64,000 nucleotides of DNA from contig JAKMXF010000321.1 in NCBI GenBank assembly GCA_024704765.1, forward strand, positions 1,137,006 through 1,201,005, read 5' to 3'. Source of the DNA: Oopsacas minuta (Eukaryota; Animalia; Porifera). The translations under genes and the position numbers were made by a program. Positions 18,075-60,233 of the stretch are shown here, one piece after another. The number at the start of each line of letters is the position of its first letter. Position 1 is the first letter of the stretch. The notes under the pieces are model-generated. The model was not told where the DNA came from. It saw only the letters and a list, made by a program, of their open reading frames with translations, and did no database searches.

Positions 18075-18847
18075 CATAGACTACTATATAATACAGATAG
18101 GAAAGTAGTCGAGGAACGAATAAAAACGAAAGGCCATTTATATAAATCTCATAAAAGTTAAATTAACCCTTCAAAATTTGTGAATTGAACTTTTTTAAGG
18201 TTAGAAAATGTAACTAATCAGTTAAGACTACCTAAAGTTCAAGCGGCCATCTTTCATCTCGTTTAGGCGCATTCAATTCACGACATTAAAATTCACACAA
18301 ATGCTCATCAAAATAGAATTTTTTACTTTATGAAATTCTTGTATTTCAATGAATTAATGTCCTCTATTTATTCATACGGTATATAAAATTAGCCGTTTTC
18401 TTTAGAATATTTGTATCACATCTTAATAGCCTATTTTTGAAAATTCATAAATGTATTTTTGATAAATATATTATTTTATGTCACATGAAATAATTGCAAT
18501 AAGCAATACTTAAAACATAGATTTAACTTGAGTGTGAATTACTTGTACGAATTCTAACAATATTAGCATAAAGTTAAATACAATACATTTTTTACAAAAA
18601 TATTTGAGAAAATGTTCAAATTATATAAATGCTAACGTCATCGCATAAATTGCGCCTAAACGAGATGAAAGATGGCCGTTTGAACCTTTTAGGTAGTCTT
18701 AACTCATTCTTCACATTTTCTAACCCTAAAAAAGTTCAATTCACAAATTTTGAAGGATTAATTTAACTTTTATGAGATTTATATAAATGGCCTCTTTTGT
18801 ACTCGTTCCTCGGCTACTTTCCTATCTGTATTATATAGTAGTATATG
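18075..18847 (+). mobile_element. Fold-back non-autonomous DNA transposon (P/Galileo-like), copy 1, 773 bp
   Basis: ~195-bp TIRs beginning CATAGACTACTATATAATACAG / CATATACTACTATATAATACAG; perfect 7-bp TSD GTGTATT at 18068-18074 and 18848-18854. Confidence 0.85.
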
Positions 18848-22270: not shown

Positions 22271-23786
22271 ATTTGAGTTAAAATTGTATTTGAAATTTAT
22301 TGTTGATATTTGTCATTGGGCTAATTCATGGGTATATTTTTCAAAAAATGGAAAAAATCCATGAATTTGCCTATTCTCAGTGACAAATATCAACTAACCA
22401 TTTCAAATAAATTTTAATAAAATGAAAATAAAATTTTGGCAAATTTCTATGGAAATTAATGAAACAAAGTCCCTATTAGGAGGCTTTGAAGTAAATCGTG
22501 CAAGGGCCAATTCATTTTAAATTTCTTTGGAAAAACATAGTTTCGTTTACGTCAAAAAGGTGCTAAAATCTCGTGTTTGGGGCGGGAATTGGTTAAAACG
22601 AAGTGGTAAAATTTCGCTATATAGAATATGAATTAACAATATTATTTTTGATCCCCCTATCCCCCTATCGACGCCCCTGCATATGGAGCTGCGAAACGTT
22701 TCTCATTTACAGTAGCCTAATTTGAATTATCTAAAAAATGTATATTGATTATCTGATTGAGACATAAGGGTTCGTTCGCTTTGTGACGAGGGTCTACATT
22801 CATGGAATGAAAATGTTAGCAGTTCCATCTTTAAGAGTAAATGGTATGTGAAATTATGACACCAATTCTCGATGTCTCTGTACCGTACAACATAGAACAT
22901 TACATCAACCATTCTCATACTTGTCAACGAGCTTCCTCCCTCTCAGTTTGAATTTCTATCAAACTTAGAGGGGGCAAGCTCTCTCATTTGAAAAAGAGCC
23001 TAGCATGGCCGCAGTCTCTCTTTTTTATTAACATGCATTGGGGCTAAAATGCCCAATGCATGTTATACAAATATCGATATCGGGGAAATCTCCTAATAGA
23101 TACGATATATCGAGAAAATGTAAAGCGATATTTGAAATATCCGAAATCTTTTGATTGTTTCGATATTTTTCAACCCAGTATATCGATGTCAATCCTTGAC
23201 CTACGTATTTTCCTATCATTTATGTTTGTAGATGATCTTATTGCAATTTGGTCATAAATTTTCACTCATTTTCCTTTTGACCCCTATATTGTTCCATTCA
23301 CCTCATTTTGTGTCATTATCAAGGTTACAGAATAGTGCTTAGAGAAATCGTATCAAAATGTATTACACGGGTATAGGAAGTTGGGCATGTAGTTCATATT
23401 GTCTTGAATGATTTTTGGCTAAAACTCTCGCAATAATCGAGTTATAAGTGGATATTGGCCAAAAATGTGCCATACATAACATTTGATATAACTCAATAAC
23501 GTGTCAACTTTATTATTACAAAATTTTATATTTTATGTGTAAACATCCTTAAATCACTTTATTTTAATTCTGGAATTGAAGAAGCACTAGTGATCGTTTA
23601 TCAGAGCTTTAGAAAGGGGAATATTTTTAACAATATATCAAATGAAACCCTACGAGTAGTCTAATAAATCTATTCTAACCAGTGCGAACTTCGAATTTCT
23701 GACTTGTGTAACTACCCCATAGCACTAGGATGCTGGTTAGAAGACCCTGTGATTTATGAATATGAATTGTTATTGTATAATTTAAT

Positions 23787-24104: not shown

Positions 24105-27100
24105 GTATATTTTTATAATTAAACATTGATACATTATTTTCATTTTGACACACTTTAGCCTATCAATTGGGAAACTTATCAATATTGAAAACGGAAATAC
24201 AAATTTTCAAATTTTTCCGACGTCACTTTACGTACGTACAAATATTTAATGAAAACATGGTAAATTTGACGGTACAACGCGATATATAATCTTCTGGGGC
24301 TATGAAATTAACCCAAATGTACATCTGTAGCTCCAGAACTGACCAAGTTAAGATGGTTATTTTTGAAGAACAATTTGACTTGTGGCTTTAACGTCATAAC
24401 TCCGTAAGTTTTGGAGCTACAGATTAAGTCGATAGCTGTTCTATATTGGATTCTCTATTCTAGAGTTACTTTAGCTTAACTCCCATCGACGACACGGTTT
24501 TTTGTCCACCGATTACCACATGCTATTTGCAGATTTTTCCAGTGAATATGATAAATTTTATCTGTTTAATAACACTGTACAACAAATTTCAATTTGGAAA
24601 CAAAACGAGAATCTGATTAGGTCGCTATAGTCAATTAGGATCTCCTGATTCCGAATATCAATACAGTTACTCAAACACGCAACAATTTTATAGAATTCAA
24701 CATGCAAAATGGGAAATTACAACAAATTACAAAATTATATATCAAAATATCATCTAGTCATGTAAAACCTGTGAAGATTATTAAACTACTTCGTATTTAG
24801 AGCATATATATACCAGAACGAGCTAGTATAGGAAAAAATTGGTCATTTTACTAACGAAATCTAAATCACACATACAAAAAATGAAAAAATTACACAATAT
24901 CGTAAAATACAATACAAATAAAAGGTTTAGCCAATTCAGAGCTATTTCTTGGAATAAATGAATTCAACATAACCGCGAATTTTAATCCTCAAAGGTTTTA
25001 CATAACTAGTTGATATTTAAGGAGAAACCTTTTGGTAATATATGACATTTTCTCAATTTGTGAGTTGAATTCTATAAAATTGTTGCGTGATTGAGTAAAA
25101 CTGTATTCATATTCGGAATCAGGAGATCCCAATTAACTATAGCGACCTAATCGGGTTCTCGTTTGTTCCCAAAATGACAATTTATTGTACAGTGTAATGA
25201 ATTAATTCCACTCTGTGCACTATTCACAAATATGCTGTCACTAATTGATCAACTGCTTACTATTCTAGATTCTACAAAATCCTGAAAAGAGTGAATCGGA
25301 TGTTGACATGTAAGTTTCCTCCTACCTTTTATCCATTATTTGGAAATGTCCAGTTTCTCCCTATTTTACCTTGGCAATGTTTCAATAAATTTATATTATC
25401 TTGGCATCTTCGCAAAGTGGTCGCAGACATTTGGGATGGGTCCGCAATCAGCGACTTACCATATGGTCAGTCGCTTATTGTGTATCCCGACAGTAGCAAA
25501 ATTATTTTTATAATATATATATACTTCATATTTAGCTAAGTCTATATACAAGTACGAGACCTATATAATAATTTATAGGGAAACCAGACTGGTTCATAAT
25601 AGGAGAATGTTCAGGCTATACATGTTTACATAATGCCACCACAAAATTTAGTTGTGGCTAACCAACGAATTTCATTATTATTTACCGATACAATATTGTA
25701 AGGCGTACCATATACTACTATATAATACAGATAGGAAAGTAGCCGAGGAACGAATAAAAAAGAGAGGCCATTTATATAAATCTCATAAAAGTTAAATTAA
25801 TCCTTCAAAATTTGTGAATTGAACTTTTTTAAGGTTAGAAAATGTGAAGAATGAGTTAAGACTACCTAAAAGGTTCAAACGGCCATCTTTCATCTCGTTT
25901 AGGCGCAATTTATGCGATGACGTTAGCATTTATATAATTTGAACATTTTCTCAAATATTTTGCTAAAAAATGTATTGTATTTAACTTTATGCTAATATTG
26001 TTAGAATTCGTACAAGTAATTCACACTCAAGTTAAATCTATGTTTTAAGTATTGCTTATTGCAATTATTTCATGTGACATAAAATAATATATTTATCAAA
26101 AATACATTTATGAATTTTCAAAAATAAGCTATTAAGATGTGATCCAAATTATATTCTAAAGAAAACGGCTAATTATATATACCGTATGAATAAATAGAGG
26201 ACATTAATTCATTGAAATACAAGAATTTCATAAAGTAAAAAATTCTATTTTGATGAGCATTTGTGTGAATTTTAATGTCGTGAATTGAATGCGCCTAAAC
26301 GAGATAAAAGATGGCCGCTTGAACTTTAGGTAGTCTTAACTGATTAGTTACATTTTCTAACCCTAAAAAAGTTCAATTCACAAATTTTGAAGGGTTAATT
26401 TAACTTTTATGAGATATATATAAATGGCCTCTCTTTTTTATTAGTTCCTCGACTACTTTCCTATCTGTATTATATAGTAGTCTATGGGCGTATTAAATAT
26501 TTGAGGGGTGCGCACCCACACACCCCCCGGAGAATCCGTGCCTGGTAAAAAGGTGTGAATGTATGATTTATCATGTGATAAATCATGTAGATATTGGTTG
26601 GAAAATTGAAATCTACACACTCGATTACCATGACTAGTTTGTGAAACGAAATCTCTAGCATCATTTGAATAATATACAAAAAGTTGTGATATATGTAGTG
26701 GAACCGCACAAAGTGGAGTTTTTGTCAGAATTGGGTTTAGGTTGAGCCGTAGGCAATTTTGAATGAAATTGTATACAATAATTCAAGGAGAAATTCCCGA
26801 AGTAGGGTTAAATCGCATTAAACCTGCCGCTCTAAGACTTTTTAAGGTAAGGTACCTCATAAAATGGTTGAAGGAAGGATCTGTAATGAAGACAGCCAAG
26901 TGAATCTCCAAAAGTATTTTATATCTCATAACTGGGGTAAATATACTATGAAAATCCCAGGAGTAGGTCATGCGCCATGGGTCATAAGTCATAGCCCATC
27001 AATACTTTGATTCAATAATAATGTAGATCTATGTAAAAGAGACCAAGAGATCAATTTACCAGACCTGTAATAAGTGGTCTTTTCACTGGCTATTTTGAAG

Positions 27101-30100: not shown

Positions 30101-33100
30101 ACATGTTAAAGCTGTGGTATTACTAGCGCGCTACGTTTTCTAGGTCGCTGCCCGACGAGCCGTCACATACTCAGTAGTTTCCACAGATGTTGCTTAAGTT
30201 TCAAACGGCTAAATTTCTAGTGCTTTGGTAGCTACGCGATGGAATATACTCGACACTACATGCTTCAAATTTACAAACATTTGTGAATGTATATTATCTA
30301 TGGTATGGTCATCCAAATTACATTCAATAGTTTCTGTGGTTATAAATCACGGATGTACGGGCATTGTACATCGTCCATGCCTTTAGGGTATCCCCTAAGG
30401 AGCAGCACTTAAAATTTAATGGGTAGTTATCCATTTTACTTTATTTAGAGGAGCTAAAAGAGTGTTTTCTGCTTCAAAATAAAGACAAGAAGATTCCTGT
30501 CTTACTAACAGATGATAGGGCTACCATAGATATTATTTTAAAATATTCCAACGTTGATGCTGTAGTTGATAAAGAACTTGGTAGACTCATCCATATATCA
30601 GCAGCAGAAGATAATCTCATATTAGCAGAGGCTCTGATTGATAAAAAGATCGATCTAAATATACCAAATAGCAAAGGCTTCTCGCCACTTAAGATAGCAG
30701 CAAAGAGAGGAAATGTAATAGTTTTAGAGGCATTGCTCAAAGCTAAGGCTAACCCTAATTATATTGGTAAAAAGCTGCCTGGATTTTCTCCTTTGAATAA
30801 TGCAGCTCAATTTGGTCAAATGGGTTGTGTGAAATTGTTGATTAAACACGGAGCTGATCTTGTCCACAAAGACATGACCAATACAATTATACATTCTGCA
30901 GCTTATGGCGGCCATGCTAAAGTTGTAGAGTACTTGCTTAAAGAAGTAGGAATGGATGTTAATCAGAAGAATAATGCCAACAGAACACCTCTCTACCAAA
31001 GCATAACTCAAGGTCACAACTCAGTTGCAAAGACTTTATTACATCATGGAGCTGACCCTAATGTATTGTTGGGAAAAGATAGCGAAACACTTTTACACGT
31101 AGCTATTAGAGAGGGTAGAAAGGATATCGTCAGGATGTTGCTTGATGCCAAAGCTAAACCTGACGAGCCTCTTAAGAATGGTGTGACACCTCTCATGCTA
31201 GCTGCAGAGAGGGACTTTGCTGACTACATACCTCTTATCATGGCTCATGGAATAACACTTGCGAAGAAGGATGGAGAAGGGAATACCGTACTTCATCATA
31301 TTGCAAAGCATAATTCTTGCGCTTCTGCTAGGTATATATTGAGGAGGATAGGTTTGATGAAAGGAATATCTCAAGAATTTCAATTGTACAAAAATGGCAA
31401 CAATACCAAGCAAACGCCATACGATGTAGCATTAGAATCTAGGAATGAACCTGTATTGAAGATATTCATTGGTTATGCACCGAAAGATTATTTTCGAAAT
31501 AATCCTAAACAGATTCACAATTATTTTGACTCTAAACTATACGATACACTTAAGGAGGTGATAAACAGATCAGTAACCGTGAATGAAAATAAAGGTAAGT
31601 TATTGATTAGATTATTTGATTTATGGCTGAGGTTGAGAATCGTATACTCAATCGGCAATCGCGTATTAGCAAGGCTATACTTATTATATCGTGAAATTGC
31701 GTACACAAACATAACGGTTTGAACTGTAAATCCCAGGCACAAAGTGCGGTGTATACTGCCGTCTGCAGCGACAACCAAGTGAAAACAAATGGAACGGTGA
31801 ATATTTATTCGTTTTAGTCATGAATACACAATATACGTGTTCATTATGTGCATTTTTCGCTGTAAATTGATTATTTTAGCCATTTGCTTACACAAGGAAG
31901 AAGACAATTACCTATTTCTTTACAATACATACGTTCGAGGACTAAAATCTAATAATTTAATTAACCTGGTGCATGGCCTACTAAAAGACGGCTATACATG
32001 CTGCCGAATTATAGTAAAAATAAGAGTCCAGTAGTATAATTCTCATAAGAGAAAAATTAGGCCTCCAGTGTTTGCAATTAAGACTACTTAAAAAGTAAAA
32101 ACGGCTACCCTCCATCAAGTTTATGCGCAATTATGCATTGACGTCATCATTTATACATCTTGAATACTTTTTTTAACAGAAAAAATAAGATTCCAAATTG
32201 ATGCTGAAAATTGGATATATTTTTTATACTTCACAATCAAGAGAAATATATGTAGAACGATAAAAAAATTGCTCTTTAGTATTATTATTAAGATATCTCG
32301 ATTAATTGGGAACTCCGCTTAATAGGGACAAAAGGACTTGAACTGATGTGTCCGATTAAGCGGAGTTGACTGTAATTCACAAATAGATTGTTGATAAATC
32401 TATAATGTTAAGTCCAAGGTATATATTGTGATTCTTTCAGTCGCAGAGTCCCCTAAAGTTAATTAACCACTTTATGGTTGAGCCAAACCCATCCAATGTA
32501 CAAACTCTACAAATTTCGGATCGTTTAGTGCCATCCGTGTATCATGTTGATAACAATGACTGGTAAATAGAATTTGATTTGGCCAAATTCATCCCAAATT
32601 TAGTCTATATCTATCCTAATTTTGTACATGTACGTAACGTATTGGAATTTCCTAACTCAAGAGAAATTTCTTCTTGATTGAGTTACTAATTTCCACTCGA
32701 TTACCAGAGTTGGTCCCGATTAACAGAAAATATTCAGTATTAACTTTAATGGAGATGATTCTGTTCCTGTAGATTTGTACCAATTATGCGGATTTCGCGA
32801 TTAACCGGTCTCCCAATTAAGCGGAGTTGACTGTAATCGAAAAAATATATGAAAATGGTGTAAAAAATTGATTTTACAGCTAATTTGATGAATATTTATG
32901 CAGTATGGATGAATAGGAGATTTTCCTAGGAAAGATGAAATTTACAAAATTCCAAAATTCAATTTTAGATTAGTAAATTTTTACATTATGATGTCATGAT
33001 TTGAATGAGCCTAAACGAGATAAAGGATGTCCGTTTGCACTTTTTAAGAGTCTTGATTGATTCCTTGAATTTTGGGAGAAATTGAACGCCCAAAATTGTT

Positions 33101-36100
33101 CAATTCGCAAGTATCGGAGGCCTAATTTTCTTTATGAGAATTATAAAACTTGACTCTTACTTTTTGCTATGATTCGATAGCATCTATAGGTGTATTTTAG
33201 TAGCCCATTCCCGGTGTCAATTTTACCCGATTTCAAATGTAACTTAAGTCTGAAACAGCTAAATTTCTTAGTGCTCTTGGTGGCTACGCGATCGAGCGAC
33301 AGGGTGTTACTCATCACTACATTCCTCGAAAAAATAATGACCAGCAGACAGACTGGTAGTGCAGCTCAGGGTTATGTGTTTTTGTTCTTTTCAGGGAGTG
33401 CACCCCATGACCCTCCCGTCTACATGGCGCATTTCACCAGATCCCGACTGATTTTGGGCTCCTAGATCAGGAAATTTCAGGATATTCAATATTATTTATC
33501 CAAATCTTATGGATAAAATTCTAAAATATTTTCCTTCAATTAGCCCCTGTCTCACAGTCTGGTAAAATTGCGATTATGGTGTAATATGTACTTACACTGA
33601 AGATATATGTTAAAATGTTGTCATATATAATAAATCGACTCTGTAGATTTCAAAAATGGCAACAGATTTTAGTTACACTTCTGGAAATGGGACTATAACG
33701 TAATCTGTGGTATTTTGATTTAATTCATAATTATGGTTCAAGATAAATATAAATGTGTTCTAAATTTTTGAGTGTTATATATCAGCCAGCCCTATTTATT
33801 AATAAACTTGAATAACAATTCGTATACTGCATTCCATTCTGCATTGGATACTTCATAAAATGATACTAGTGAATTAGAATACAGTAATTATAAAATATTA
33901 TAACGAAAATTGGAAATTTCTAAAATACATTTCATCCGACTCGGTGTGCCCCATACACTTAATGTCAAGAAAATTATAAGTGGGCGCCTTTGGGCGGGTC
34001 TAGAAATTATTGAAAATGAAATTTAGAAAGATATACTATGCGAAATTATCGACTATTCAACTCGCAATTATTTGCATTGTAAGATCGGGGACCTAAATTG
34101 TAGGTCAACGAGCTGAAATATGCATAATAATAGACGGATAAAAATGCTTGAGAATGAATAAATAAAAATATAATTTGTTTTGCAAAACGAGTAAAATTAA
34201 TCACATAATACATACGAATACTGATAAATACCATTGAATAACGAAAATCCAGGAATGCTGTAATATCGCAAGGATATTTGAAGAATAAATATTTGTGGTT
34301 TTCAGGTATTTCAAATTTCACGTTTTAGCCTAAGTTTTATACTTTGGTCAGACACGCTATAAGTTCATTAAGTAACTAATAATAGCATTTTTCTAGGTTG
34401 AAATAGTGTAGAATCGAATTCACACATTAATTTTGATAAATAGCGCAGTCAAATTTGCACCTATTACCGCATAATTCTACACTATGTGTCTGACTTTTGG
34501 AACCAGACATTTGGCATCAATTTGAAATATGTGCAAAAGGTGTAAAAATATGATTTATCGTGTGATAAATCATGTAGATATAGATTTGAAAGCGCGAAAT
34601 TTGGAGTCTACATACTCGATTACCCCTCACTTGCAGTTAAAAGGAAATCTCTAGCATCATTTGAATTTTACATTTTTTCCAATTTATCTCGTGAATTGGA
34701 CTTCTAGATTTCGCACAACCTCGCGGACGGAATTACGCAAGTCGCACATCGTCCATGCCATTATGGCATCTCCCTATAGAAGCTGTACTAAAAATAGCTG
34801 AAATTGTATGAATTTATTGTCCATGGACCATTATCCATCCGAATTACTCTTATGGCTTCCTATGTTGACCCTGGAGCTTCTAACATAGCTTTATCTCCAG
34901 TATCATCACAGAAGCCCATTGAATGTAATTTGGATGGACCATGGATAATAAAATATTAGTCTTTTCACTATTCTGTGAATTCGAGGCACTTAGATCCGAG
35001 TATATTATTTCGCGTAGCGATCAATAACACTATAAAATTGCAGTAGTCACCATCTAACACAGTAATGATTCGCAAATGCTTTGGGTTGCTCAGCATTCAG
35101 TCCCTTCTAAATGATAACATTTCCAGTTGTAGTAAACCGACTATTCATCTCTTCCAGTATAGTATCAATAAACTGGTAGAAATACCTAGAAATAGTTATG
35201 GTTTCGCTTGGCATTCTATCTTCCAAGATCGTTGCCTCAGTTACAGACATTTTGGGGGTTTCTAGGACGAGGTTTTTCATCAACATGGGAGGTTTGCTTT
35301 CGAAGCTCGACAATTTCAATCCAAAGGAAATGGTAATCTTGCAGGGTCTTCAGTGCCACGTACTAACAGAATGACAGAAGCCTCAGAGTTTCAGCCGTTA
35401 AGGATTTTGATAAAATATGAGCTCAAAGAATCTTGATCCGAATTTTTTGCAGCTATCTACCAAAAGTAAATTTATGTGGAAAGCAGAGTATCTGACGTTA
35501 GAAATTCTTCAGTAACTCCACTAGTTTCGCTATCTTCAAGCCAATATCGAACACAAATGCTTAGTTGTTTATGTTTGATGGGTATCTTGTCTCATCAACA
35601 ATTTGGGACCAATACTTGACCAGAGTTATTTCAACTTAATTTGTATCTGTACTAACATGACCATAACGTTCAAGATTTCGTTCTGAATTCGAGGTGATGG
35701 TTTTGAGAGTTTTCGCTGGACGTGACTTCCTCAAATTCTCTTGGATTCAACAAGATCCAAGAGCGAGAGAAGTTTCCCTTGTTTTCTGAAGTCTCTGACA
35801 CGTCATTCCCTATTTATGAAATTCGCTGGACTGCATCCCATCTCAAAATAACAATTGCCACATTGAACCAATCCCTGTTTGTAGCAACCAACTGTCTTCT
35901 TCCAGTATCAAGTTGAGCCTATATGTCTTTTTCAATCGTTTCAAAAAATCATTCCATCTAGCAAGTGTAAACGTTGTAAACGTTTCTTACTCAATAGAGA
36001 TAAGTAAGATAACTCATTATGTATTTCAGTTTCAAGTATGCTCAGTAGCGGATTAACCATGGTGCCAAAAGAGTCTTGGCACCCAGCCTCGACTTTTAAC

Positions 36101-39100
36101 CGGCCTCGCGGTCTTAGCATATATGGATGAAATTTTCCTGTTTGTTAATAGGACATTCTTATTTAGATTTCGGATTTACCTCAAAAATTATAAATTTCTT
36201 AATTTTCTATGCCTAGAGACCCTAGTCTATATGTATATACATAGCCTACTAAATATAAGGCCTAACAGTAAAAGTACCAGGGATGAAGTATTAGCTGAAA
36301 GCATTTATCTACACGGTTCCTTTATTGCAGAAAAATGCATTTTTGGCTGAATAAATGTATTACATTTTTGTAGAACATCAAACTTTACACAAATAAATGG
36401 TAAAAACTTTTAGGAATGTGTAAAAATATGTCTCTAGCAAGTATTTATTTAGCAAAATATTTTATTCTTTGATGCCTTGTAGAACGTTAAATATTGCATT
36501 TATCAACTCAAAGTGAATAAATGAAATGATCTATAGATCCTTTTATACAAAATGTCAAAAATTTGTCATTCAAAAGTTGGCTCGTTGTTGAGTTAAGGTA
36601 GAGACCATGGATGACAAGTTTTTATGAATATTCAATTATAACTCGAGAATCATTAAAATTATCGTAAAATCAGGATAGGCAATTTATACTATTTACCCAA
36701 CTTCCCATACCTTTGCAATACATTTTGATATGAAATAATTGAAGAGTATTGCAGAATATTGAAAATGACCATATATGGGCATCGTCACATTGGTGAGAGA
36801 TATCATATCAAAATGTATTGCAAAGGTATGGGAAGTTGGGTAAATAGTATAAATTGCCTATCCTGATTTTACGATAATTTTAATGATTCTCGAGTTATAA
36901 TTGAATATTCATAAAAACTTGTCATCCATGGTCTCTACCTTAACTCAACAACGAGCCAACTTTTGAATGACAAATTTTTGACATTTTGTATAAAAGGATC
37001 TATAGATCATTTCATTTATTCACTTTGAGTTGATAAATGCAATATTTAACGTTCTACAAGGCATCAAAGAATAAAATATTTTGCTAAATAAATACTTGCT
37101 AGAGACATATTTTTACACATTCCTAAAAGTTTTTACCATTTATTTGTGTAAAGTTTGATGTTCTACAAAAATGTAATACATTTATTCAGCCAAAAATGCA
37201 TTTTTCTGCAATAAAGGAACCGTGTAGATAAATGCTTTCAGCTAATACTTCATCCCTGGTACTTTTACTGTTAGGCCTTATATTTAGTAGGCTATGGTAT
37301 ATACTATACATATATATATTATACTTAGTTTATTAATTGGACAGTTATCTTACTTTCTTCTCATATCCTAAGACATTTAGCATCAGTGGCGTAGCACTGC
37401 TTCAAAAAGTGGTCCGGCTAGAAATAGAAACAAACCTTGGATGTATGGTCCAATAAATGTACACTAAAAGCATTGAGAAGTAATTAATGAAAATATAAAG
37501 TAGTCTCATAGTAGAAACACTAGATTACATGTCCTGTTTTGAAAACGTACCAAAAACCGTCATTCGGTATTCAGTGCTCGAAATTGATTGACCATAAATG
37601 GAAATATATAACGATTAACATCTTAGAAAACTATTTACATACTTTGGATACGATAGTGCGAAGTAATAATTCATCAAAACATGAAAAGTCATGGTCTGCT
37701 AAAAACCGGCCAGTAAATTCTACCCAAAAAGGGTCTGGTTTTGTGCCGGACCTACTCCTATACCTATGAGCATATACATATCAATGCGAAAATTCAAGGG
37801 AGGTGCTGAAAAAGAAAGCTTTCTTTATTAGTGTTAATTTTTCTGAATTATATTTGATTATGATGACTGTTTTTAATGAATGGAGGCTAAAAATAACAGC
37901 CTCACAATCCTACTGGCCGCCCGGCCTCACAGGCCCTTAATCCGCCCCTGCGTATGCTATAGCGAATTCAAGATTTTAGTGGATAAACTGTGATCGTCCG
38001 AATCAGTTCGTCATAAGATTGTTCCATTGTAAGTAGTTTCTCATCAATTCCCAATCAGAATATTGTACAAAGTCTTGATCGTGAGGGCTAGTCATAACGC
38101 TTCTACCTTGTGATTTCATTCTCTAAATCAAAATATTGATGTTAAGGGATGAAAAATACTTAAATTTTCAATGTCCCCAACTATAATTTTCCCTAATCAT
38201 ATACCTAATGACAAATGGAGTGTCCCGGCCTCCTGAATATACCCTATACTAACCTTTACAAAGATATTATAAATTGTACGTAGATTAGCAAACATTAGCA
38301 ATCAGTTATTTGACCTAATTCTATTATTAATTTAGGAGAAGTTTCTGCACAAACTAGTTTCTTCGATTCAAATGACAGTGGACAATACCCAGACGATCCT
38401 AAATTCAAACCTCTAAAAGAATCATTATTACATAAATTGATAGATTGTCAAGATCAAGAATTGAAGTACCATCCTCTAGTCAGTATAATTGTAGACAAGA
38501 AGTTACGCTTCTACCGCTGGTGGTATGTAATTTCATTCTTTTTCTACCTTTTTTTCCTTATTTGCCTAGCTTACGCACTAGTTCAAGCTTCTACCGTGTG
38601 TGACTCAAATATTTGGCTTTATCAGAACCCAGCAGACTGGGTTAGGGGAGGTTGCGAAATAATTTGTCTGCTTTATTTTATTTTCTTCTTATTTAACGAA
38701 GCAGTGGAATTTATTATAGAATGGACACAGATATACGAAGAAAACAAAGATAAATGTGAAGAAAGTCAATTAACTATAAAATATATTAGCGATGCAACAA
38801 GTGGCGGAGACAAAACATGTCTATCTATATTCTTCGTACAATGGAAAAATATCCTTGGTCTCTTTCATAAATTAGATGTAAAGCTGAAATATTTTTTCAG
38901 TGCATTCCCGGAGTATTTTGATGGTGTTTATAACTTTATCGATTGGTTAGGAATTGTTTCTTTCATCGTCTTAATTTTCCTGAGAGCAACTAGCGTCTAT
39001 ATACAGTGGTCGTTTGCTGGACTCACTTTTATCTTTTTCAGCCTTTCGCTCTTCAAATATACTCGTATATCTCCAGCATTAGGTGCATACGTGAGTGGCG

Positions 39101-41687
39101 TATTCAAGATATTTGTAATAGATATTCCTCGTTTCTTCGTAATTATTTTTGTAATCTTGATTGCGTATATCGGTGGTATTCACTTAGCAGCGAGACAGCA
39201 GCCAACATCCACCCAGAGCATATGTTCGAACCCGCCTTATCAAGTTTGTAACAACACTCAATCTGAATTCTTTTGGTTCAATCGAGAATTGACTTGCTTG
39301 TATGATCTGAGGAGACCTCTGCTGTCTGGAGTGATTTTCATGTTGGATGGCGGCCCAGGAAATCATGTAGAGGACATCTTACAAGATAATTTCTTTTTTA
39401 CTATTGTATATTTAGGATTTTCCTTCACAATAATCGTTGTCATGTTGAATATTTTAATTGCACAACTATCTGAAACTTATGGCGAAATTATCAAAGAAAA
39501 TACTTATCATTATAAGATTGCCCTGGTTGTTACTTTGGAGCTTAAATCTAATCTTGCTTTTTGGTTTGGCAAACGATTCAGAAAATTCACAGCAATTGAA
39601 TCATTAATTATACCTCTTTCGCGCTGGAACACACTCAAAGATGGTGAGTTTAATTAAATATTGTGTACACAAAATCTATAGAAAGATTGTTATTCTGTTG
39701 TCTTTGCCTTGATATTCGATAAGCGCCATTTAGCTTGTCTATATAATAAATCGTTAGTCCTTTAACATAATAATATGAGTGTGAAGTTAGCGCAGGATTC
39801 TACACACTTTAAATTTTATGCCATTCCAATTTTTTGATTTGGTTAAACGTACAGAACAAATTGAAGACATACGGACGTTTATGAATATCCGAAATAATTA
39901 CCTTCAAATTTTAGGACAAAATGTTTTGTAGTTTTTTTTCAAAATTGAAATTTCTACTAATTACACATGTTTCAGGACGTTGGACGTTGTTAGTTACGAC
40001 AAAATTTTGTGCATTTATGTTAACATTCTTGTGAGGCATAGTTTTTCAACTAATTTTGAGTTGCGATCTGATTCTATACTATCTTTCATTTACATTTATA
40101 CTAAATTGCTTACTAGCCCTTGCTAGCTAGTTGCACGACAGCTTAGTGCCTCAGGTTAGCTGAAGTAGAAATAAATTAAATAGATAAATTTCTTGATGGT
40201 TTAGGTCGCGCGCGACCAGATACTATACTCGGCACTACTTGCCTCGAGGATAATTTTTCCGGAATTTTTTGTTATATTCACCATGGTCCATCCAAATTGC
40301 ATTCAATGGCCTTCTGTGATGACCACTGGAGATACTGTCGCTTTTGGTTAGTAATCTCGGCACTTCGTGCCTCGGGTATTAAGGAATTCTTAAATTTGAA
40401 AATTTGGATTTTTTGGTACAGTCATGATGACATAATATTCCCATGAAGAGTTAGCTTTTGGTAAGAATCATGACGTCTCAAAAATTGTCCCATTATGTGG
40501 TACCTGTGATTCATATTTCAAACTTCTCTCATGTATATTGGCTGAGCCGTGGTTAATAATGTGATTGTTCGAAATCCAAAAAGGTGACAATGACATCATA
40601 ATTTCGTTGTGTGAGTTTTCGTCCAAGACTCGAACATGTCCGAACCAGGCCCAAAATACCCCTGTATGCCAAAACTCAACTTTGGGGTCCTCTAGTTTCT
40701 TCAATCAATTCTGGACAGACAAACATATATACAGGCAGCCCTCGGATTTCGTGGGAGTTAGGTTCCTGAGAATTGTCTCGAATGGCAGAATTACGAACGG
40801 CAAGACGTTAGTTCATGAGGATAGTGTAGTTATGTTCCTAGTTTACAAAATGACCACCAATATGTGATTCTATGTATGATCGGCCTGTATACACATATAT
40901 AAATTCATTGCGTGTTAATCATATAGATTAGTGAACGACCGAAATTTATTTATATTTTAACAATTCTCAGACAGTAACCAATGAAAACTTATCAAGAGTG
41001 ATAAATATACATTAGATGTACTCATTCTAAATAGTCTTTCGATTGGCAATCCATTGATTTATGTAATTGAAAATAGAATAATTAAGATACAATAATTATT
41101 ACGAGCCGTTTCGCTTGCATATATCTGTTGATCCCTAGTCTCTAGCATTTTACTTAGAAATGTATACGAATATGATTAATCACCTAAAAGGTATGAAAAT
41201 ATACACATCAGATATAAATCCCAAATTTCGAGTCTTAACCGACTTCGGCCGAAGTGTTTCATTCCTAACGAAAGGAAAACGATAGTTTGCCAGTTCGTTT
41301 TAACCAATTCCGTACCAAAATCCAGATTTCAGCACCTTTTTGACGTCATAAAATGACACATTAACTCAAATATTCGCTATCTCAACTTTGATTTCCCTGA
41401 GCTTCGAGTTACTGGATATTGACAGTATCTATTTGGCTAATTATTACTAATGTAAATATTTCTTAGATAGTCCCAATCGCAATGTGGATCAAGTGGCATT
41501 GGATACAAATAAAGATTTAAACAAATCTACAAAAATGATAGAAATAGAATTCGAAAAAGCTACTAAAACTAATGAAGAGCTCAACCATAAAATCGACGAA
41601 CTTACTGACAACATGTCTGTTATCGATGATAGGTTAGACAGCTTTGAACAGAAAATTAATAAAGTTATTGAGTTATTGAATAAATAG
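23787..41687 (+). CDS. TRPA1-like: Ankyrin-repeat TRP cation channel, TRPA-like, ~1199 aa (1174 aa from ATG 23862); join(23787-24104,25269-25309,27934-28295,28742-28945,30449-31594,38336-39643,41467-41687)
   Basis: All six introns are GT-AG with compatible phases (0,2,1,1,1,1); 3600 nt spliced and open. About 13-15 ankyrin repeats, pre-S1 ELKYHPLVSIIVDKK, six hydrophobic segments, S6 end MLNILIAQLSETYGEI and a C-terminal coiled coil. Orthology to TRPA1 is untested and the start codon is uncertain. Confidence 0.85.
24573..25194. mobile_element. 622-bp CACTG-ended MITE with a 3-bp TAA TSD (CMC/Chapaev3-type) in TRP intron 1
   Basis: ~100-bp imperfect TIRs (CACTGTACAA...GATTAGGTCGCTATAG...GATTCCGAATAT); TAA at 24570-24572 and 25195-25197. 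Confidence 0.8.
25269..25309 (+). CDS. TRPA1-like: TRPA-like channel, putative 41-bp micro-exon 2
   Basis: TATTCTAG|ATTCTACAA...GACAT|GTAAGT; converts phase 0 to the phase 2 that exon 3 needs. Confidence 0.6.
25709..26486 (-). mobile_element. Fold-back element copy 2 (778 bp), inverted relative to 18075-18847, in TRP intron 2
   Basis: Reverse complement of copy 1 with only scattered substitutions and indels by eye; TSD GGCGTAC / GGCGTAT (6 of 7 match). Confidence 0.85.
27934..28295 (+). CDS. TRPA1-like: TRPA-like channel, exon 3 (ankyrin repeats)
   Basis: GDSLLHYASRVG, GFNILHSAVEGG; acceptor TTTATAG|, donor G|GTTACC. Confidence 0.85.
28742..28945 (+). CDS. TRPA1-like: TRPA-like channel, exon 4 (ankyrin repeats)
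   Basis: GNTALHL, QNTLLHLAA; branch-point-like ACTAAC at 28721; donor A|GTAAGT. Confidence 0.88.
30449..31594 (+). CDS. TRPA1-like: TRPA-like channel, exon 5 (ankyrin repeats)
   Basis: Open from the acceptor at 30448 into ORF 30733; about 9-10 ankyrin repeats; donor G|GTAAGT. Confidence 0.9.
31972..33209. mobile_element. Older fold-back element of the same CATRG/7-bp-TSD class, with nested pogo-like MITE fragments, in TRP intron 5
   Basis: Left CATGGCCTACTAAAAGACGGCTATACATGCTG; right (reverse complement) AATGGGCTACTAAAATACACCTATAGATGCTA; TSD CCTGGTG / CCCGGTG; shares a GCCTAAACGAGAT motif with copies 1 and 2. Confidence 0.65.
34500..34794 (-). repeat. Family A HINE-like copy (inverted)
   Basis: GTCGCACATCGTCCATGCCATTATGGCATCTCCCTATAGAAGCTGTACTAAAA is the reverse complement of the family A 5' end. 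Confidence 0.65.
35060..36030 (-). pseudogene. hAT (ZMYM1/DUF4371-like) transposase remnant
   Basis: Minus-strand SQIVDET..KQLSICVRYWLED and YFYQFIDTILEEMNSRF; many disruptions; boundaries approximate. Confidence 0.6.
36043..37950. mobile_element. Non-autonomous hAT element hosting the perfect fold-back
   Basis: TIR CAGTAGCGGATTAA / CAGGGGCGGATTAA (reverse complement); 8-bp TSD AGTATGCT / CGTATGCT (7 of 8 match). Confidence 0.75.
36240..37296. mobile_element. 1057-bp fold-back element: perfect 494-bp inverted arms with a 69-bp spacer (P/Galileo-like)
   Basis: Arms 36240-36733 and 36803-37296 were compared base by base with no mismatch found. Termini CATAGCCTACTAAA; 7-bp TSD GTATATA at 36233-36239 and 37297-37303. 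Confidence 0.93.
38336..39643 (+). CDS. TRPA1-like: TRPA-like channel, exon 6 (pre-S1, S1-S6, pore, TRP-like helix)
   Basis: In frame with ORF 38437-39657; acceptor AATTTAG|, donor G|GTGAGT. Confidence 0.9.
40199..40944 (-). mobile_element. Family B HINE-like element, near-complete copy, in TRP intron 6
   Basis: Short terminal inverted motif TTT(A/C)GGTCG, perfect palindrome GGTCGCGCGCGACC at 40204-40217, and similarity to 10250-10720. Confidence 0.55.
41467..41687 (+). CDS. TRPA1-like: TRPA-like channel, exon 7 (C-terminal coiled coil)
   Basis: Acceptor TTCTTAG|, phase 1; heptad-rich NEELNHKIDELTDNMSVIDDRLDSFEQKINKVIELLNK*. Confidence 0.8.
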
Positions 41688-45666: not shown

Positions 45667-46210
45667 ATTAGTGTAGCTCCTATAGGAAGATGCCCTAAGG
45701 CATGGACGATGTGCGACGTACGTACGTAAGTATATCCTTCCGCTTGCGGCCGTGCCAAATCTAGCAGTCCAATTAAAATGAAAATTGGCATACGTATACA
45801 TTTTGGATCGAGATTTGTACCTCGGGTATGAATTTTTTCTAAAGTGAAATTTTCACACCTTTTTGGTGATAAATCATATTTTCATAAATTTCTATGTAAA
45901 ATTCAAAAGTAATCTAGAGATTACCTTTCAACATTTTGTCAGGGGTAATTGGGTGCATAAAGTCTCATATGGAAAATTTCAGAGTCGAAAAGTTACAAAT
46001 TCACTGAATTATCATATTCTCACACCTCTTGCTAATATTTCTAAATTGATGCTAAAGATTATGTTTAACTGCTAGTCAGGGGTAATCGAGTATGGAAATT
46101 CCAAATTTGACATTTTCAAATCTATATCTACTTGATTTATCAAATGATTTATTATATTTTCCCACCATTTTGCATATATTTCAAATTGATGCTAGAGGTT
46201 CGTTTCAAAA
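45667..46210 (+). repeat. Family A HINE-like copy with internal duplication
   Basis: TAGTGTAGCTCCTATAGGAAGATGCCCTAAGGCATGGACGATGTGCGACGT matches the copy at 15931; the AGGGGTAAT..GAGTATG block is repeated. End approximate. Confidence 0.65.
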
Positions 46211-46727
46211 GGTAATTGCAAGATAATTATTTAGAATTTTATCCTTCGGATTTGAAGATAAAACAATAGGTGATCCGATTTTGAGGAAAGTACGTACTGA
46301 TTAAAATCCTGATATGCGAACTGTGTAAACAATCTGTAGCAGTCACGAAACTGTCCAAGAATTTTACCTGCCAGTCGACCGAACTTATCTCGACTTTTGG
46401 CATGCTTTAATTTGTATTGCAGAAATATGTATCCTAGGTGCCAGCAACAGGGAGCTAAATTAGTCGAATTAGTGAATAATTGGGACCTTTCACCTATTTC
46501 GAATTAACTGTCTTTTTACCAAAATGGAAAACGTATTTATTTCAAAGGCCATTATCCTCCAACATTACTCACTAGACACTACGGTCGCATGCTATGACAC
46601 TGATATGGAGTTTTTCCGAACCCTACCATGCTCAGATATACAGAGTCAGACCTTCTACGAGCTTCAATACTTCTTGGCAGACCGTCAGCTGTGCCAATTG
46701 AAAAAGTCTTCAATAATTGGTTTCTTC

Positions 46728-52950: not shown

Positions 52951-53528
52951 AGTGAACGAAAGTTGTATTCAATAGCAGTGGTCAGCTGATCGCCAGCACA
53001 TCCCCAAGCTGTAAACTCTTCAAATCATATCTTAATTATCAATCTATGTTCAAAATATTAAATACCAAATGATATAAAACTCTGTACAAAATATAAGGAT
53101 GTTTCAAGATAAGGTTCTCACGTTTCTGAGGTCGCGTCGTTAGTCCAAATTCATATGTTTACGTTAGTCCAAATTTTTGGGTGATGTTTGCGTGAGTTGG
53201 ATCTGGAGCAGCTTGTGAGTTGCTGAGAGTATTTAGAACTCACGTTGGAAGGTGATAGAATTGGCATTTTCGTAGAGTATCTAGCTAGATTGGCTTGAGC
53301 TGAGAAGATGAGCATTTCAGTATACTATTTGGATAACTGGTGTGGTGTTTGATTGGATTCGAATTGGATCTGTAGCAGGCTGTGAGTTGCTGAGAGTATT
53401 TATATTCAAACAACAAAAGTAAATGGCTGTATTTCCTCGCGACTAAATTTCCCCGTGCATGCATGCATTCGATCACCAGATATTTGGACTAATGCATGCG
53501 TCCCTTTCTGAGTTATCGTACAGACTGC

Positions 53529-53779
53529 GGATAGCACATGTATCCTCTTATAACTCGATAATCGTGCATTTTATAATACCATTTTATAGTATACACCCAA
53601 CTTCCCATACCCTTGCAATACTTTTTGATAAAATATCTCTCAAGATTATTGCGGAATCTCTTAATTGACCATTTATGGGCATATTTATGATTACGCCATA
53701 TAGGTAAGAGATATCATATGACCATTATGTCCACGATTATCGAGTTATAAATGGATATTGGTAAAACATGTGCTATCCA
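53529..53779. repeat. Diverged core of a relative of the 36240 fold-back
   Basis: Shares CCCAACTTCCCATACC.TTGCAATAC and GACCAT.TATGGGCAT with the 36.7-kb centre; inverted TTATAACTCGATAATCGTG at 53548-53566 and 53732-53750. Another relative lies at ~23340-23560. Confidence 0.65.
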
Positions 53780-54597
53780 TGGTATATGCTATAAGAAAAA
53801 AGCCAGCTTTATCATGACAAATTTTTATATTTTGTACAGGAACGGTTCTAGATCATTTGGAATTTTAACATTTTGAACAGATTAATACTTAACTTTCCAC
53901 ATGGTTTCAAAGATGGAACATGTGTTAATACATATTTGCCAATTATGCTAGTAGATGACGTCACTTCGATCTGTAAATCTTCACAAATGTGGCTTTTGTG
54001 AATTCTTGCATATCAATAATACATTTATTCGAGTGAAAATTACCAGTTTCTAATTATCTGCCGTTATAGAATTTCCCATCAAAATATAGCCTCTTCCTTT
54101 TATCCCTGGCCCAGTGAAAATGGGCTCAGTGATCAGGCTTTATCTTAATTATAGTTCCACATTATAGCAAAATCCATGAAATACACACCTTTAGGGTTAG
54201 TACTGTACGAATGTGTCTAATGAATATATAATCTGTGTGATCCTTGTTGTGACGAAATTATAAAATTTTGCAACTTTACATATTCATTAGAAAATATCCA
54301 AATACTTTATGAAACATTTTTAACATTTCTAAGGAAACGTAGGGTTATAAGGAGATTATCTTAGCAAGGCACATATGAAGGGTATAGATCCGTATTGTAC
54401 AGGTTACCTATATAGTTCAGACCCTAAGCTATTTAGTTTGTGCTGTGGTACACTAAGGAATATATAATATGTAATATTTCAAATATTTGTAGGTACTATA
54501 CAGCTATACAATAGTCAGTACTAATGACTTTGACCTACAGTATCTATCTGGTTTATATTAGTAATTCTATATCATAATAGTATTTGTAGATTGTATA

Positions 54598-56450
54598 ATG
54601 GCAGATAAGTTAATAGACTCAGAAGGGAGAGAGAACTTGGTCTACATAAAGACAGATGCTGGTAGCTATAGAGGTTGGAGGGTTGATTTGTTGATAGACC
54701 CCTTATCCAACAAAATGGAAGAGAAATATTGCTATGTGCCTTTTGTAATGGATTGTTAAGAGATGCTTGTTTCTACCAGGGAGGAGTGAGGTGTGGTGTC
54801 TGCATTCCTGAGGGCGTAGCATGGCAACCTGTCATAATGAACGGTGAAATTGTCTCCGATAAAATGGTAGTTTATTTGTTGTTATTTACAAGTGTTTGTT
54901 TGTGTTTACAGATGAGTTACCGTAGTCTGGGGCTACTTTGGCCCACTGGATTTGCTTTAGCCCAAATATCAAAGTTTCAAAGCAACTAGATTAGATTCAG
55001 TATTATACTTAAATATGACTTGCCAAATTTTTAACGAATTTTCAAATATCGGTAGACAATTTCGAATATAAATACAATATCTATTCGATACGTAAGGAAA
55101 TTTCAATACTTGGGCTAAACCAAACCCAGTGGGCCAAAGTAGCCCCAGTTTACGGTATTTATTTTAGATTAGTTGTCTCTGAAGAAGAGAGGGTGTGAAT
55201 GGAGTGACACAGTGAGACAGCAATACACCACCTGGAGGAAAGTGAGTTCTTTCTGTACTGTGTCCTCTGGGTTGTGTCTGTCTAGAGGGAGAGAGGAAGG
55301 GGAAAGTCATGAAACTGAAGAAGAGACTGGTTCCAGAACACCAGAGAGACTCTTGTCCCTTAAGAGAACTGGTGAGTGAATTAAGCGTGAATAAAGTTAA
55401 AGCCTGTGAGATGAATCTGTTTGGAGGACTGTGAGCACTTTCGAGTTCCTTGTCCTAATAGATATGTGATAGAAGGAGAGGATCCAGACAAGTGAAGAAG
55501 GGAGATGTTCCTATACATTTAGCTAATGAGTACAGAAAGTAGAGTGTCCTTATTGGGTCTATGGGTGTAGAGAGGAGATGGTGAGGAAAGAGATGGATAA
55601 CCATGAAAGAGAAATCGTGCATATTCACTACAGATTATCCATGACTGACATGAAACTGAAACAAATTGAAACATCTAAACTATTGCAAGACAAACTTGCT
55701 ACAGCAACTGGAGAGAATAGCATTCGTAGAAAATGATAATGAAATTATTACTAAAGAGCTATCAGAAGTCAAACAAAAACAAATAGAAACATCTAAAGAT
55801 CATAAACTAAGATAAAAGACAAACTTGACTGGACTACTGAGAAGATAAAATTCTTAGAAATTGAGAATGAAAGTAAAACCAAAGAACTATCAAAATTTAA
55901 TCATATGGAAGAGAACCTGAATCATCGAAATGAAACATCTAAAGATAATAAACTGATAGAAGAGAAAATGTCCATAGCAAATTCCAAAATCGAGAATTTA
56001 AAGAACCACATTACTGAGAAAGATTCAGAACTGGAATCAGTCAAAGCAATTCCTTATTCTTATACACCTCTACCTCTACCTACAGACAATTAGAATCGAA
56101 GATTAAAGGTTTTAAACAGAAGATAGAAAACTGAGAGAATATCCGTTCTGTGTAGGTTTATACAAGTGTGTCAGTGGAATATTCGATGGGATTGGTGGAT
56201 TCCAGATAAAATAGGTCTTTACATATATATATTATGAAAGGAGATTATAATGATAAACTCCACTAGCTTATCAAATACAAATTTACGTTTATTCTACTCA
56301 ATCACATTAAGTAGGCTATGATAAAACCCATTGTATAGTAATATATACATACATATTTACATTTGAGATTCTTGACATTATCTTTCCTTATTTTACTTTT
56401 TAGCAAAAACCAATTCTAATCTATTGATCATTGCTAAAGGGATGAATGTT
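54598..56450 (+). pseudogene. TRAF-like: TRAF-like pseudogene (RING-like domain, TRAF zinc fingers, coiled coil, MATH remnant)
   Basis: Fragments in changing frames: LLCAFCNGLLRDAC..RCGVC; SC.LKKRGCEW; LCPLGC..EHQRDSCPLRE; DCEHFRVPCPNR; CPYWVYGCREEMVRKEMDNHE; coiled coil; LESKIKGFKQK; MKGDYNDKLH*LIKYKFTFILLN. Intron 54867-55167. Many frameshifts and stops; 3' end approximate. Confidence 0.8.
54920..55155. mobile_element. 236-bp Tc1/pogo-type MITE inside the TRAF pseudogene intron
   Basis: ~60-bp TIRs CCGTA..CTGGGGCTACTTTGGCCCACTGG; TA TSD at 54918-54919 and 55156-55157. Confidence 0.8.
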
Positions 56451-58890: not shown

Positions 58891-60233
58891 CAGGGTGTCT
58901 CAAAAGTTTTTTCACCTTATTCATCAAGCCAGTAAATTGTATTTATTGTAAAGAATCATTAGACTATTTGCCAATGTATTCACCGTTAAGTTCAATACAA
59001 GAATTAATGCGGTTTGGCATTCCATCGATTAAATTCTGGAGAATCGATGGGCTAATACCACTCCAGATATTTTCCAAGATTTTCGCCAGTTGTTTAGATT
59101 AGTAGCGGGCTTCCTCTTGTCCAGCTCTGCCTGCATAATGGCCCACAGATTTTCTATAGGATTCAAATCTGGCGAGTTATTAGGCCATATATCTTTCGCC
59201 CAGAATCCTGGTAAATGATCAGAAAGCCACTTCTGTGTCTTTATAGCAGAATGAGCAGGGGCTCCATCCTGCATAAAAAAAGTGTCGGATATCTTTCGAT
59301 ACAATTTCCTCTGAGTCAGGGGCCCTCTCATCTTCTTACGTTTATAGGTAGGGAGACAGCACTTAGCCAGTATTTCATTGATATAATAGTCCGCATTCAC
59401 AGAATGTCTTGGGGAGATTAGATGGAGTTCTGATAGTCCACGATGACTCATCATTCCCCAGACCATTAATCTTGGAGGATTTTTGACCGTTTCGACTGGA
59501 GTGATATTACGCGAACTGACGTCCCAAACCCGATCATTCTGTGAATTTGTAGGGTGAAAAAGCTCAAAGGGACTTTCATCACTGAAGAAAACTCGCTCCC
59601 AATCAAGTGAAGTCCAAGATTTATGCTCAAGACAGAACTTGACCCTTTTAGACTTCTGTACTTCCGTCAATTTAGGGTTTGATGGCCGTTTATACGCTTT
59701 AGCCCCAATAGAATTGTGTAAATAACGGTGAACAGTATCTTTACTAATAGCAACATATTTACTTGAAATATATTTCGCCAATTTCCGAGTTGAATGCCAT
59801 CGTTTGCCTATGGATTTTCGAATTATTATTTTTGGGACTCGGGAAAGTTTCGGCGGACGTCCAGAACGAGGCTTGTCATTGAGCATTTCTCCAGCTTTTT
59901 GCTTTTTGTTCCAATTCTTTACGGTTCGAATTGTGACTCCAAGTGTGTCAGCAACTGTTCTTTGACTGGAACCAGCTAGTAGCATACCTATCGCTCTCTC
60001 GCGGATGGATAATCTCGTCATTTTGACATCCATAATATTGAAATTTGATAATTATACAAAGTATCGCAAAATGAATCACAAAATTAAATATTTGATACTA
60101 CTCATGGTTGAGAACATTAATCAACTATAAATTGACAATGCTAAAATAAATGGGTAGGTAGTAAATGAGGTAGACTGATTTCTGTTCAAATATATTGAAA
60201 TACTAATGGTGAAAAAACTTTTGAGACACCCTG
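58891..60233 (-). mobile_element. Full-length Tc1-like DD37E element, 1343 bp
   Basis: Perfect 26-bp TIRs CAGGGTGTCTCAAAAGTTTTTTCACC; TA TSD at 58889-58890 and 60234-60235. Confidence 0.95.
59029..60033 (-). CDS. DD37E transposase, 334 aa, complete triad but C-terminus altered by a 1-bp frameshift
   Basis: HTH region, FSDES / MQDGAPAH / NSPDLNPIENLW with 37 residues between D2 and E. The canonical tail KQLAKILENIWSGI..MPNRINSCIELNGEYIGK* lies in another frame ending at 58964. Confidence 0.85.
   Translation of the reverse strand: MDVKMTRLSIRERAIGMLLAGSSQRTVADTLGVTIRTVKNWNKKQKAGEMLNDKPRSGRPPKLSRVPKIIIRKSIGKRWHSTRKLAKYISSKYVAISKDTVHRYLHNSIGAKAYKRPSNPKLTEVQKSKRVKFCLEHKSWTSLDWERVFFSDESPFELFHPTNSQNDRVWDVSSRNITPVETVKNPPRLMVWGMMSHRGLSELHLISPRHSVNADYYINEILAKCCLPTYKRKKMRGPLTQRKLYRKISDTFFMQDGAPAHSAIKTQKWLSDHLPGFWAKDIWPNNSPDLNPIENLWAIMQAELDKRKPATNLNNWRKSWKISGVVLAHRFSRI

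Follow-up and report, generated by a model that had tools for sequence, protein, structure and literature searches.

What kind of element is the long perfect palindrome that lies in an intron of a putative TRP-type channel gene of the glass sponge Oopsacas minuta, and how did it come to be there? The locus belongs to a stretch of 64,000 nucleotides from contig JAKMXF010000321.1 of assembly GCA_024704765.1 (positions 1,137,006 to 1,201,005, forward strand), hereafter called the window, whose own numbering is used throughout (contig position = window position + 1,137,005). The palindrome is a fold-back element of 1,057 bp that occupies 36240-37296 (JAKMXF010000321.1:1,173,245-1,174,301). It is a non-coding "two-TIR" DNA transposon insertion, made of two terminal inverted repeats (TIRs), with defined ends and a 7-bp target-site duplication (TSD). 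We consider it fairly likely that this insertion is a young non-autonomous cut-and-paste transposon of O. minuta, moved by a P/Galileo-like enzyme acting in trans and nested in a hAT-like element within the TRP-type intron.

The left arm (36240-36733) and the right arm (36803-37296) are exact reverse complements of 494 bp each, with 0 mismatches, and they enclose a spacer of 69 bp (36734-36802, read on the forward strand) that makes up the loop. The repeat tool returned arms of 497 nt and a spacer of 63 nt because two more bases pair past the single mismatch at 36734. The left arm starts with CATAGCCTAC and the right arm ends with GTAGGCTATG, giving termini of the form CATAG...CTATG. Directly outside these termini lies the TSD GTATATA, with identical copies at 36233-36239 and 37297-37303. 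A 7-mer match at the same spacing occurs at 10 of 62,700 window positions (1.6e-4), though the local sequence is TA-rich. The mismatch-free 494-bp arms, the 69-bp spacer, the CATAG ends and the 7-bp TSD had all been described in a first-pass annotation of this DNA and were all re-derived here from the sequence. The element is non-coding: in arm and loop, reading frames stay open for at most 43 amino acids, and the GC content is 29%. No Rfam family matched over 31.5-38.5 kb. The arms contain a weak direct pair of 22 nt (77%, spacing of 109 nt). Folded as RNA, the element is predicted to form one unbroken 494-bp stem of -834.5 kcal/mol.

Two other fold-backs of the window carry the same ends. 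The 16-nt terminal motif CATAGNCTACTAWATA has eight matches with at most two mismatches in the window, compared with 0.53 expected, and six of them are both ends of three fold-backs located at 18075-18847, 25709-26486 and 36240-37296. All three have TSDs of 7 bp, respectively GTGTATT/GTGTATT, GGCGTAC/GGCGTAT (6 of 7 bases alike) and GTATATA/GTATATA. The first two are copies of a sister family of 0.77 kb: that at 18075-18847 has ends CATAGACTAC and CATATACTAC and a perfect TSD, and that at 25709-26486 lies in the opposite orientation. This sister family resembles the 1,057-bp element by its 16-bp terminal motif, its 7-bp TSD and its fold-back layout, but its interior is unrelated beyond ~16 bp and its arms are only 86-89% alike within a copy. 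Since motif, TSD length and layout are common to both families, they presumably use the same transposase. The two solo matches to the motif (3340 and 56305-56320) have neither an inverted partner nor family similarity, and were set aside as chance matches or fully decayed ends. Around the 5' part of the TRP-type gene, the two sister copies lie ~7 kb from each other and are 98% identical. Ectopic recombination between two copies so oriented can invert the DNA between them, which is known from Galileo.

The window also holds older members of the family to which the fold-back at 36240-37296 itself belongs. A decayed fold-back at 53500-54034 consists of an inner arm, the loop and the opposite arm at ~60-68% identity; it retains the same loop (53.58-53.68 kb) and its two arms are only ~60% alike. 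A fragment made of a single arm lies on the minus strand at 23304-23627 (~65% identity). The old copy at 53.5 kb already has the arm-loop-arm layout, which therefore goes back to the ancestor of the family and did not arise at the 36240-37296 locus. The element is a young member of a family with many copies, and hence an ordinary transposon insertion. Non-coding, with TIRs and a TSD and present in many copies, it has the features of a miniature inverted-repeat transposable element (MITE) or other non-autonomous DNA transposon, although classical MITEs are shorter than its 1,057 bp.

Contigs of public sequencing runs (X1, X2, X3 and X5) likewise indicate many copies. Word depth is ~45-60 in the flanks, and the summed depth over the fold-back is ~2,500-58,000 (~100x the flanks); according to the warning of the tool, summed contig depth is not a copy number, and we read it only as many copies of at least 90% likeness. 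The loop is crossed by contigs that derive from other copies (X3 record 21; X5 records 28 and 29), and contigs of such copies leave the fold-back at 37297-37299 into flanks that are unlike one another. Moreover, two deletion derivatives occur at single-copy depth, one joining 36397 to 36879 and the other, its mirror image, joining 36657 to 37139. At many sites, nearly all of the family depth carries a letter other than that of the copy at 36240-37296. A collapsed family consensus is ruled out as an origin of the assembled copy, since the latter carries family-minority letters at many sites. In X5, the family sequence is mostly 90-95% like and the unique flanks are not found; X5 may be a related sponge or the same species thinly covered. 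When metagenomes were scanned with the 21-nt terminus, two contigs were returned; their match is confined to exactly these 21 nt and was put down to chance.

Two further contigs concern the site itself. A contig of X3 at single-copy depth lacks the fold-back: 36207 and 37311 are connected in it by 24 letters of another sequence, and its shorter side is 23 nt long. It may tentatively be taken for a copy of the surrounding element, or possibly for the other haplotype, lacking the fold-back. In X2, a contig of 1,589 nt (record 9) matches the left flank over 35700-36169 with 9 differences in 470 nt; the match ends at 36169, and this contig may come from a paralogous locus or from a second haplotype.

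The surrounding element extends over 36043-37950 and is 844 bp long without the fold-back. Its ends, CAGTAGCGGATTAA and CAGGGGCGGATTAA, are alike at 12 of the first 16 bases, and it is flanked by a TSD of 8 bp (AGTATGCT at 36035-36042 and CGTATGCT at 37951-37958; 7 of 8 bases alike). From ~36.0 kb onward, inside this host element, contig depth is ~4- to 30-fold higher than in the single-copy flanks. Therefore, the host element is itself repeated in the genome; no second copy of it is present within the window. An 8-bp TSD and short TIRs starting with YARNG are structural features of hAT elements, and the host element shows both. The pattern of hAT target sites is nTnnnnAn, to which AGTATGCT does not conform. 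The host element contains no open reading frame (ORF), and the adjoining minus-strand ORF fragments gave no Pfam match. One of these fragments, at 35107-35319 to the left of the host element and likewise without a Pfam match, presumably resembles the region that precedes the hAT dimerisation domain, which is a guess on our part. From the 8-bp TSD and the CAG ends, our guess would be that the host element is hAT-like. The first-pass annotation had placed the fold-back in a TSD-flanked hAT element: the nesting holds, the outer element being older, with short TIRs and a TSD of 8 bp, and the hAT label is a purely structural one. A dispersed repeat occupies 34494-35039 of the same intron, with copies at 46044-46211, 10596-10741, 26548-26670, 15931-16239 and elsewhere (72-89% identity).

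The whole nest is contained in a GT-AG intron of 6,741 bp on the forward strand (31595-38335), with donor AAAG/GTAAGT at 31594/31595 and acceptor TTTAG/G at 38335/38336. The intron is in phase 1 on both sides; the reading frames join because it is preceded by one base and followed by two bases of a split codon. The upstream exon (30733-31594, forward strand) encodes ankyrin repeats (Pfam Ank_2, E 4.8e-54). The downstream exon (38336-39657, forward strand) encodes a predicted transmembrane and pore region of TRP type: its Ion_trans match (E 5.5e-4) is below the Pfam cut-off, and it aligns with TRPV4 chains over the S1-S6 region with E of 5e-4 to 9e-3. The two exons were searched separately. By its predicted domains, the host gene is an ankyrin-repeat TRP-type channel gene, and the location in a TRP intron given by the first-pass annotation is thereby borne out. 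The mean intron of the O. minuta genome is 341 bp according to the literature, so that the present one is ~20x longer. The locus illustrates how, in a compact genome, nested transposons can enlarge an intron to ~20x the mean length.

In the scenario that we favor, a transposase encoded by another element would recognize the terminal motif CATAGNCTACTAWATA, and the fold-back would have been excised, then reinserted with a 7-bp staggered cut. This copy would have landed in a TA-rich stretch of the older, short-TIR, hAT-like element with an 8-bp TSD, the host of the nest being the 6.7-kb intron, swollen by transposable elements, of the putative ankyrin-repeat TRP-type channel gene. The length of the cut would point to a P/Galileo-like enzyme. 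TSDs of the P superfamily measure 7-9 bp. Galileo elements have TIRs for which lengths of 0.5-1.2 kb as well as ~0.3-1.2 kb are given and of which some pairs are 99.9% identical, and also many copies reduced to two TIRs and 7-bp TSDs of consensus GTANTAC, which lies within a 15-bp palindromic motif of the target. The 494-bp arms fall within the wider range of TIR length (~0.3-1.2 kb), and 7-bp TSDs flank the fold-back as well as both sister copies. The genome paper of O. minuta provides a RepeatMasker table in which DNA transposons account for 15.4%, hobo-Activator elements for 2.69% and the class 'Mirage, P-element, Transib' for 1.22% of the genome. From these sequence features, the fold-back is probably P/Galileo-like.

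Two of the closest known counterparts are found in Drosophila. The two-TIR (2T) copies of Galileo likewise have long arms, two TIRs with a short spacer, 7-bp TSDs, AT-rich insertion sites and multiple copies with deletion derivatives. They differ by the internal tandem repeats of their TIRs and by their GTANTAC TSDs, to which the sponge TSDs (GTGTATT, GGCGTAY and GTATATA) are only loosely alike. Furthermore, Galileo is known only from Drosophilidae, whereas the host of the fold-back, whose terminus reads CATAG, is a glass sponge. BuT5, a MITE derived from a divergent P element in the Drosophila repleta group, is likewise ~1 kb long, non-coding and multi-copy; it has only terminal sequences in common with its presumed master and was moved in trans. 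It differs from the sponge element by TIRs of 3 bp with sub-terminal repeats and by TSDs of 8-9 bp, and it is not a fold-back.

How recent the insertion would be depends on how the identity of the arms is understood. The absence of differences over 494 bp implies an arm divergence of at most ~0.6% (95% upper bound). Taken at face value, either the insertion or the last homogenization of the arms is recent. The sister family provides a comparison: the left arm of the copy at 18075-18847 groups with the right arm of the copy at 25709-26486 (97.9%), and the right arm of the former groups with the left arm of the latter (98.5%), whereas the two arms of one and the same copy are 86-89% alike. This grouping is supported by 97 sites, and differences between arms are inherited through transposition in the sister family. 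Therefore, these elements do not homogenize their arms as a rule, and ongoing arm-to-arm conversion, put forward as a general mechanism, is rejected for the sister family. The family of the fold-back at 36240-37296 is old and the arms of this copy are identical, which would leave room for occasional homogenization in the source lineage. The identity of the arms would come mainly from the youth of the copy, with possible contributions from homogenization in its source lineage and from smoothing during assembly. The first-pass annotation had equated zero divergence with a very recent insertion or ongoing conversion; this statement is weakened both by the inheritance of arm differences in the sister family and by the smoothing that the SPAdes assembler may have caused.

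Several points weigh against the reading of the element as a young transposon moved by a P/Galileo-like enzyme. Tandem Repeats Finder (TRF) detected no tandem array within the arms, its sole array being a 26-nt stretch in the spacer; the internal repetition that characterizes the TIRs of Galileo, which carry multiple THAP-binding sites, is thus lacking. Compared with GTANTAC, all three TSDs begin with G, two begin with GT and one ends with TAC, three sites being too few to establish this consensus. The defining feature of the superfamily would be an autonomous relative with the same termini that encodes THAP together with a P-type transposase (RNase H-like with a GTP-binding insertion); neither such a copy nor such an ORF was found among the ORFs of the window. 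As to the Galileo-type P membership proposed by the first-pass annotation, TSD length and long arms speak in its favor and the lack of repeats in the arms against it, and the three TSDs do not clearly follow the target consensus. In addition, the public-run evidence placed on 35700-37900 consists of Logan contigs and not of raw reads; X1-X3 come from one sample of one study, possibly that of the assembly itself, and X5 is labelled as another organism. Among the contigs listed, the left junction is carried solely by X1 record 3 (36040-36263), which enters the fold-back by 24 nt and continues with 17 unplaced letters, and none bridges the right junction. Finally, on contigs alone, the perfect identity of the arms is inseparable from smoothing in a de Bruijn graph. 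Part of these points would suit a fold-back that is equally mobile but depends on a transposase of another superfamily (Mutator/Foldback-type, hAT or undescribed), which we regard as possible but rather unlikely. The lack of Galileo-like tandem repeats in the arms favors this alternative, as does the terminus, of which only CAT and ATAAGG align with the 23-nt TIR of the D. melanogaster P element (PMC11368186). Mutator-type Foldback elements, such as Tm1 of root-knot nematodes, Drosophila FB and Tetris, also have an architecture of long inverted arms (PMC3169594, PMC4079207), but their arms are internally repetitive, whereas those of the sponge element are non-repetitive and accompanied by a 7-bp TSD. 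The same length of 7 bp is found in all three motif-bearing fold-backs. By contrast, TSDs are 9 bp long in the Foldback families named above, typically 9-10 bp in Mutator/Foldback elements generally and 8 bp in hAT elements.

Other points would suit an assembly artefact, either a chimeric palindrome or a real element whose few arm differences were merged by the assembler. SPAdes was run on Illumina reads together with Canu-corrected PacBio reads to build the assembly, which was then polished. Judging from the method, the two reverse-complement arms would form a single edge in a de Bruijn-graph assembler, where isolated differences would appear as bulges and normally be merged; reads that map equally well to either arm would not be told apart by polishing. 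Moreover, at several sites the letters proper to this copy are supported at ~1x the single-copy depth and not at 2x (in X1, 58.6 at 36383 and 35.1 at 36438); this could mean that one arm only carries them, that the insertion is heterozygous or that short contigs were left unplaced. The 17 unplaced letters after 36263 in the junction contig point the same way. Nevertheless, we consider an artefact improbable: unlike the products of fold-back chimerism, the element has a 7-bp TSD and family-typical ends on both sides, and its arm-loop-arm layout is a trait of the family, shared by the old copy of the window and by other copies represented among the contigs. The element also lies 1.17 Mb into a contig of 1.33 Mb, and the same assembly preserves arm differences of 6-14% in the sister family. 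A last alternative is co-option of the fold-back: its 494-bp hairpin in the intron would serve as a source of small RNAs or as a regulator of editing or splicing of the TRP gene. The sense transcript of the intron is predicted to fold into a perfect 494-bp duplex, and long double-stranded RNA (dsRNA) is a substrate of Dicer and ADAR. However, no RNA run is among the public runs that hold the stretch, the element is one of many copies without sign of constraint in a nest of decaying transposons, and old copies of the family decay freely; co-option thus appears very improbable. There is no indication of a function of the fold-back. A more far-reaching scenario, to which we also give little credence, combines conversion and regulation: the arms of the active lineage would be repeatedly rewritten by intramolecular conversion or hairpin-templated repair, so that masters stay perfect palindromes while the family diverges, and intronic copies would feed dsRNA to the small-RNA or editing machinery, thereby policing the family and modulating the TRP gene.

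A single insertion of a young non-autonomous transposon is in itself ordinary. If its link to P/Galileo elements is true, a glass sponge would be home to thriving fold-back P elements with long TIRs, which have hitherto been reported from Drosophilidae alone; this would suggest that the architecture is old or has arisen repeatedly. Moreover, a natural hairpin of 494 bp that is predicted to be perfect in a pre-mRNA can be viewed as a test case for the dsRNA pathways of sponges; we found no papers on ADAR or Dicer in Oopsacas. At the DNA level, the 69-bp spacer should make the extrusion of a cruciform much less likely than for a palindrome without spacer.

The window carries other elements and ORFs besides those described above. 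A fold-back-like element of 636 bp at 24566-25201, with arms ~81-84% alike and ends that contain CACTGTACAA, is unrelated to the CATAG family. An inverted-repeat element of 240 bp at 54918-55157 has the appearance of a MITE, with arms of 87 nt (77% alike), a spacer of 66 nt and ends TACCGTAGTCTGGGGCTAC. A single-exon ORF of 312 amino acids on the minus strand (3433-4371) has no Pfam match and is an annotated gene in GCA_024704765.1. Two adjoining ORFs on the forward strand (4-516 and 622-1023; 170 and 133 amino acids) look transposon-derived and gave no Pfam match at E < 0.01. Furthermore, three ORFs of the window are of the Tc1/mariner transposase type (13278-14210 on the forward strand, 14880-15635 and 59029-60033 on the minus strand). 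The two that were scanned match DDE_3 and helix-turn-helix (HTH) domains. No record was returned for an exact look-up of the protein encoded at 59029-60033, an ORF of 334 amino acids that runs uninterrupted between its ATG and its stop codon.

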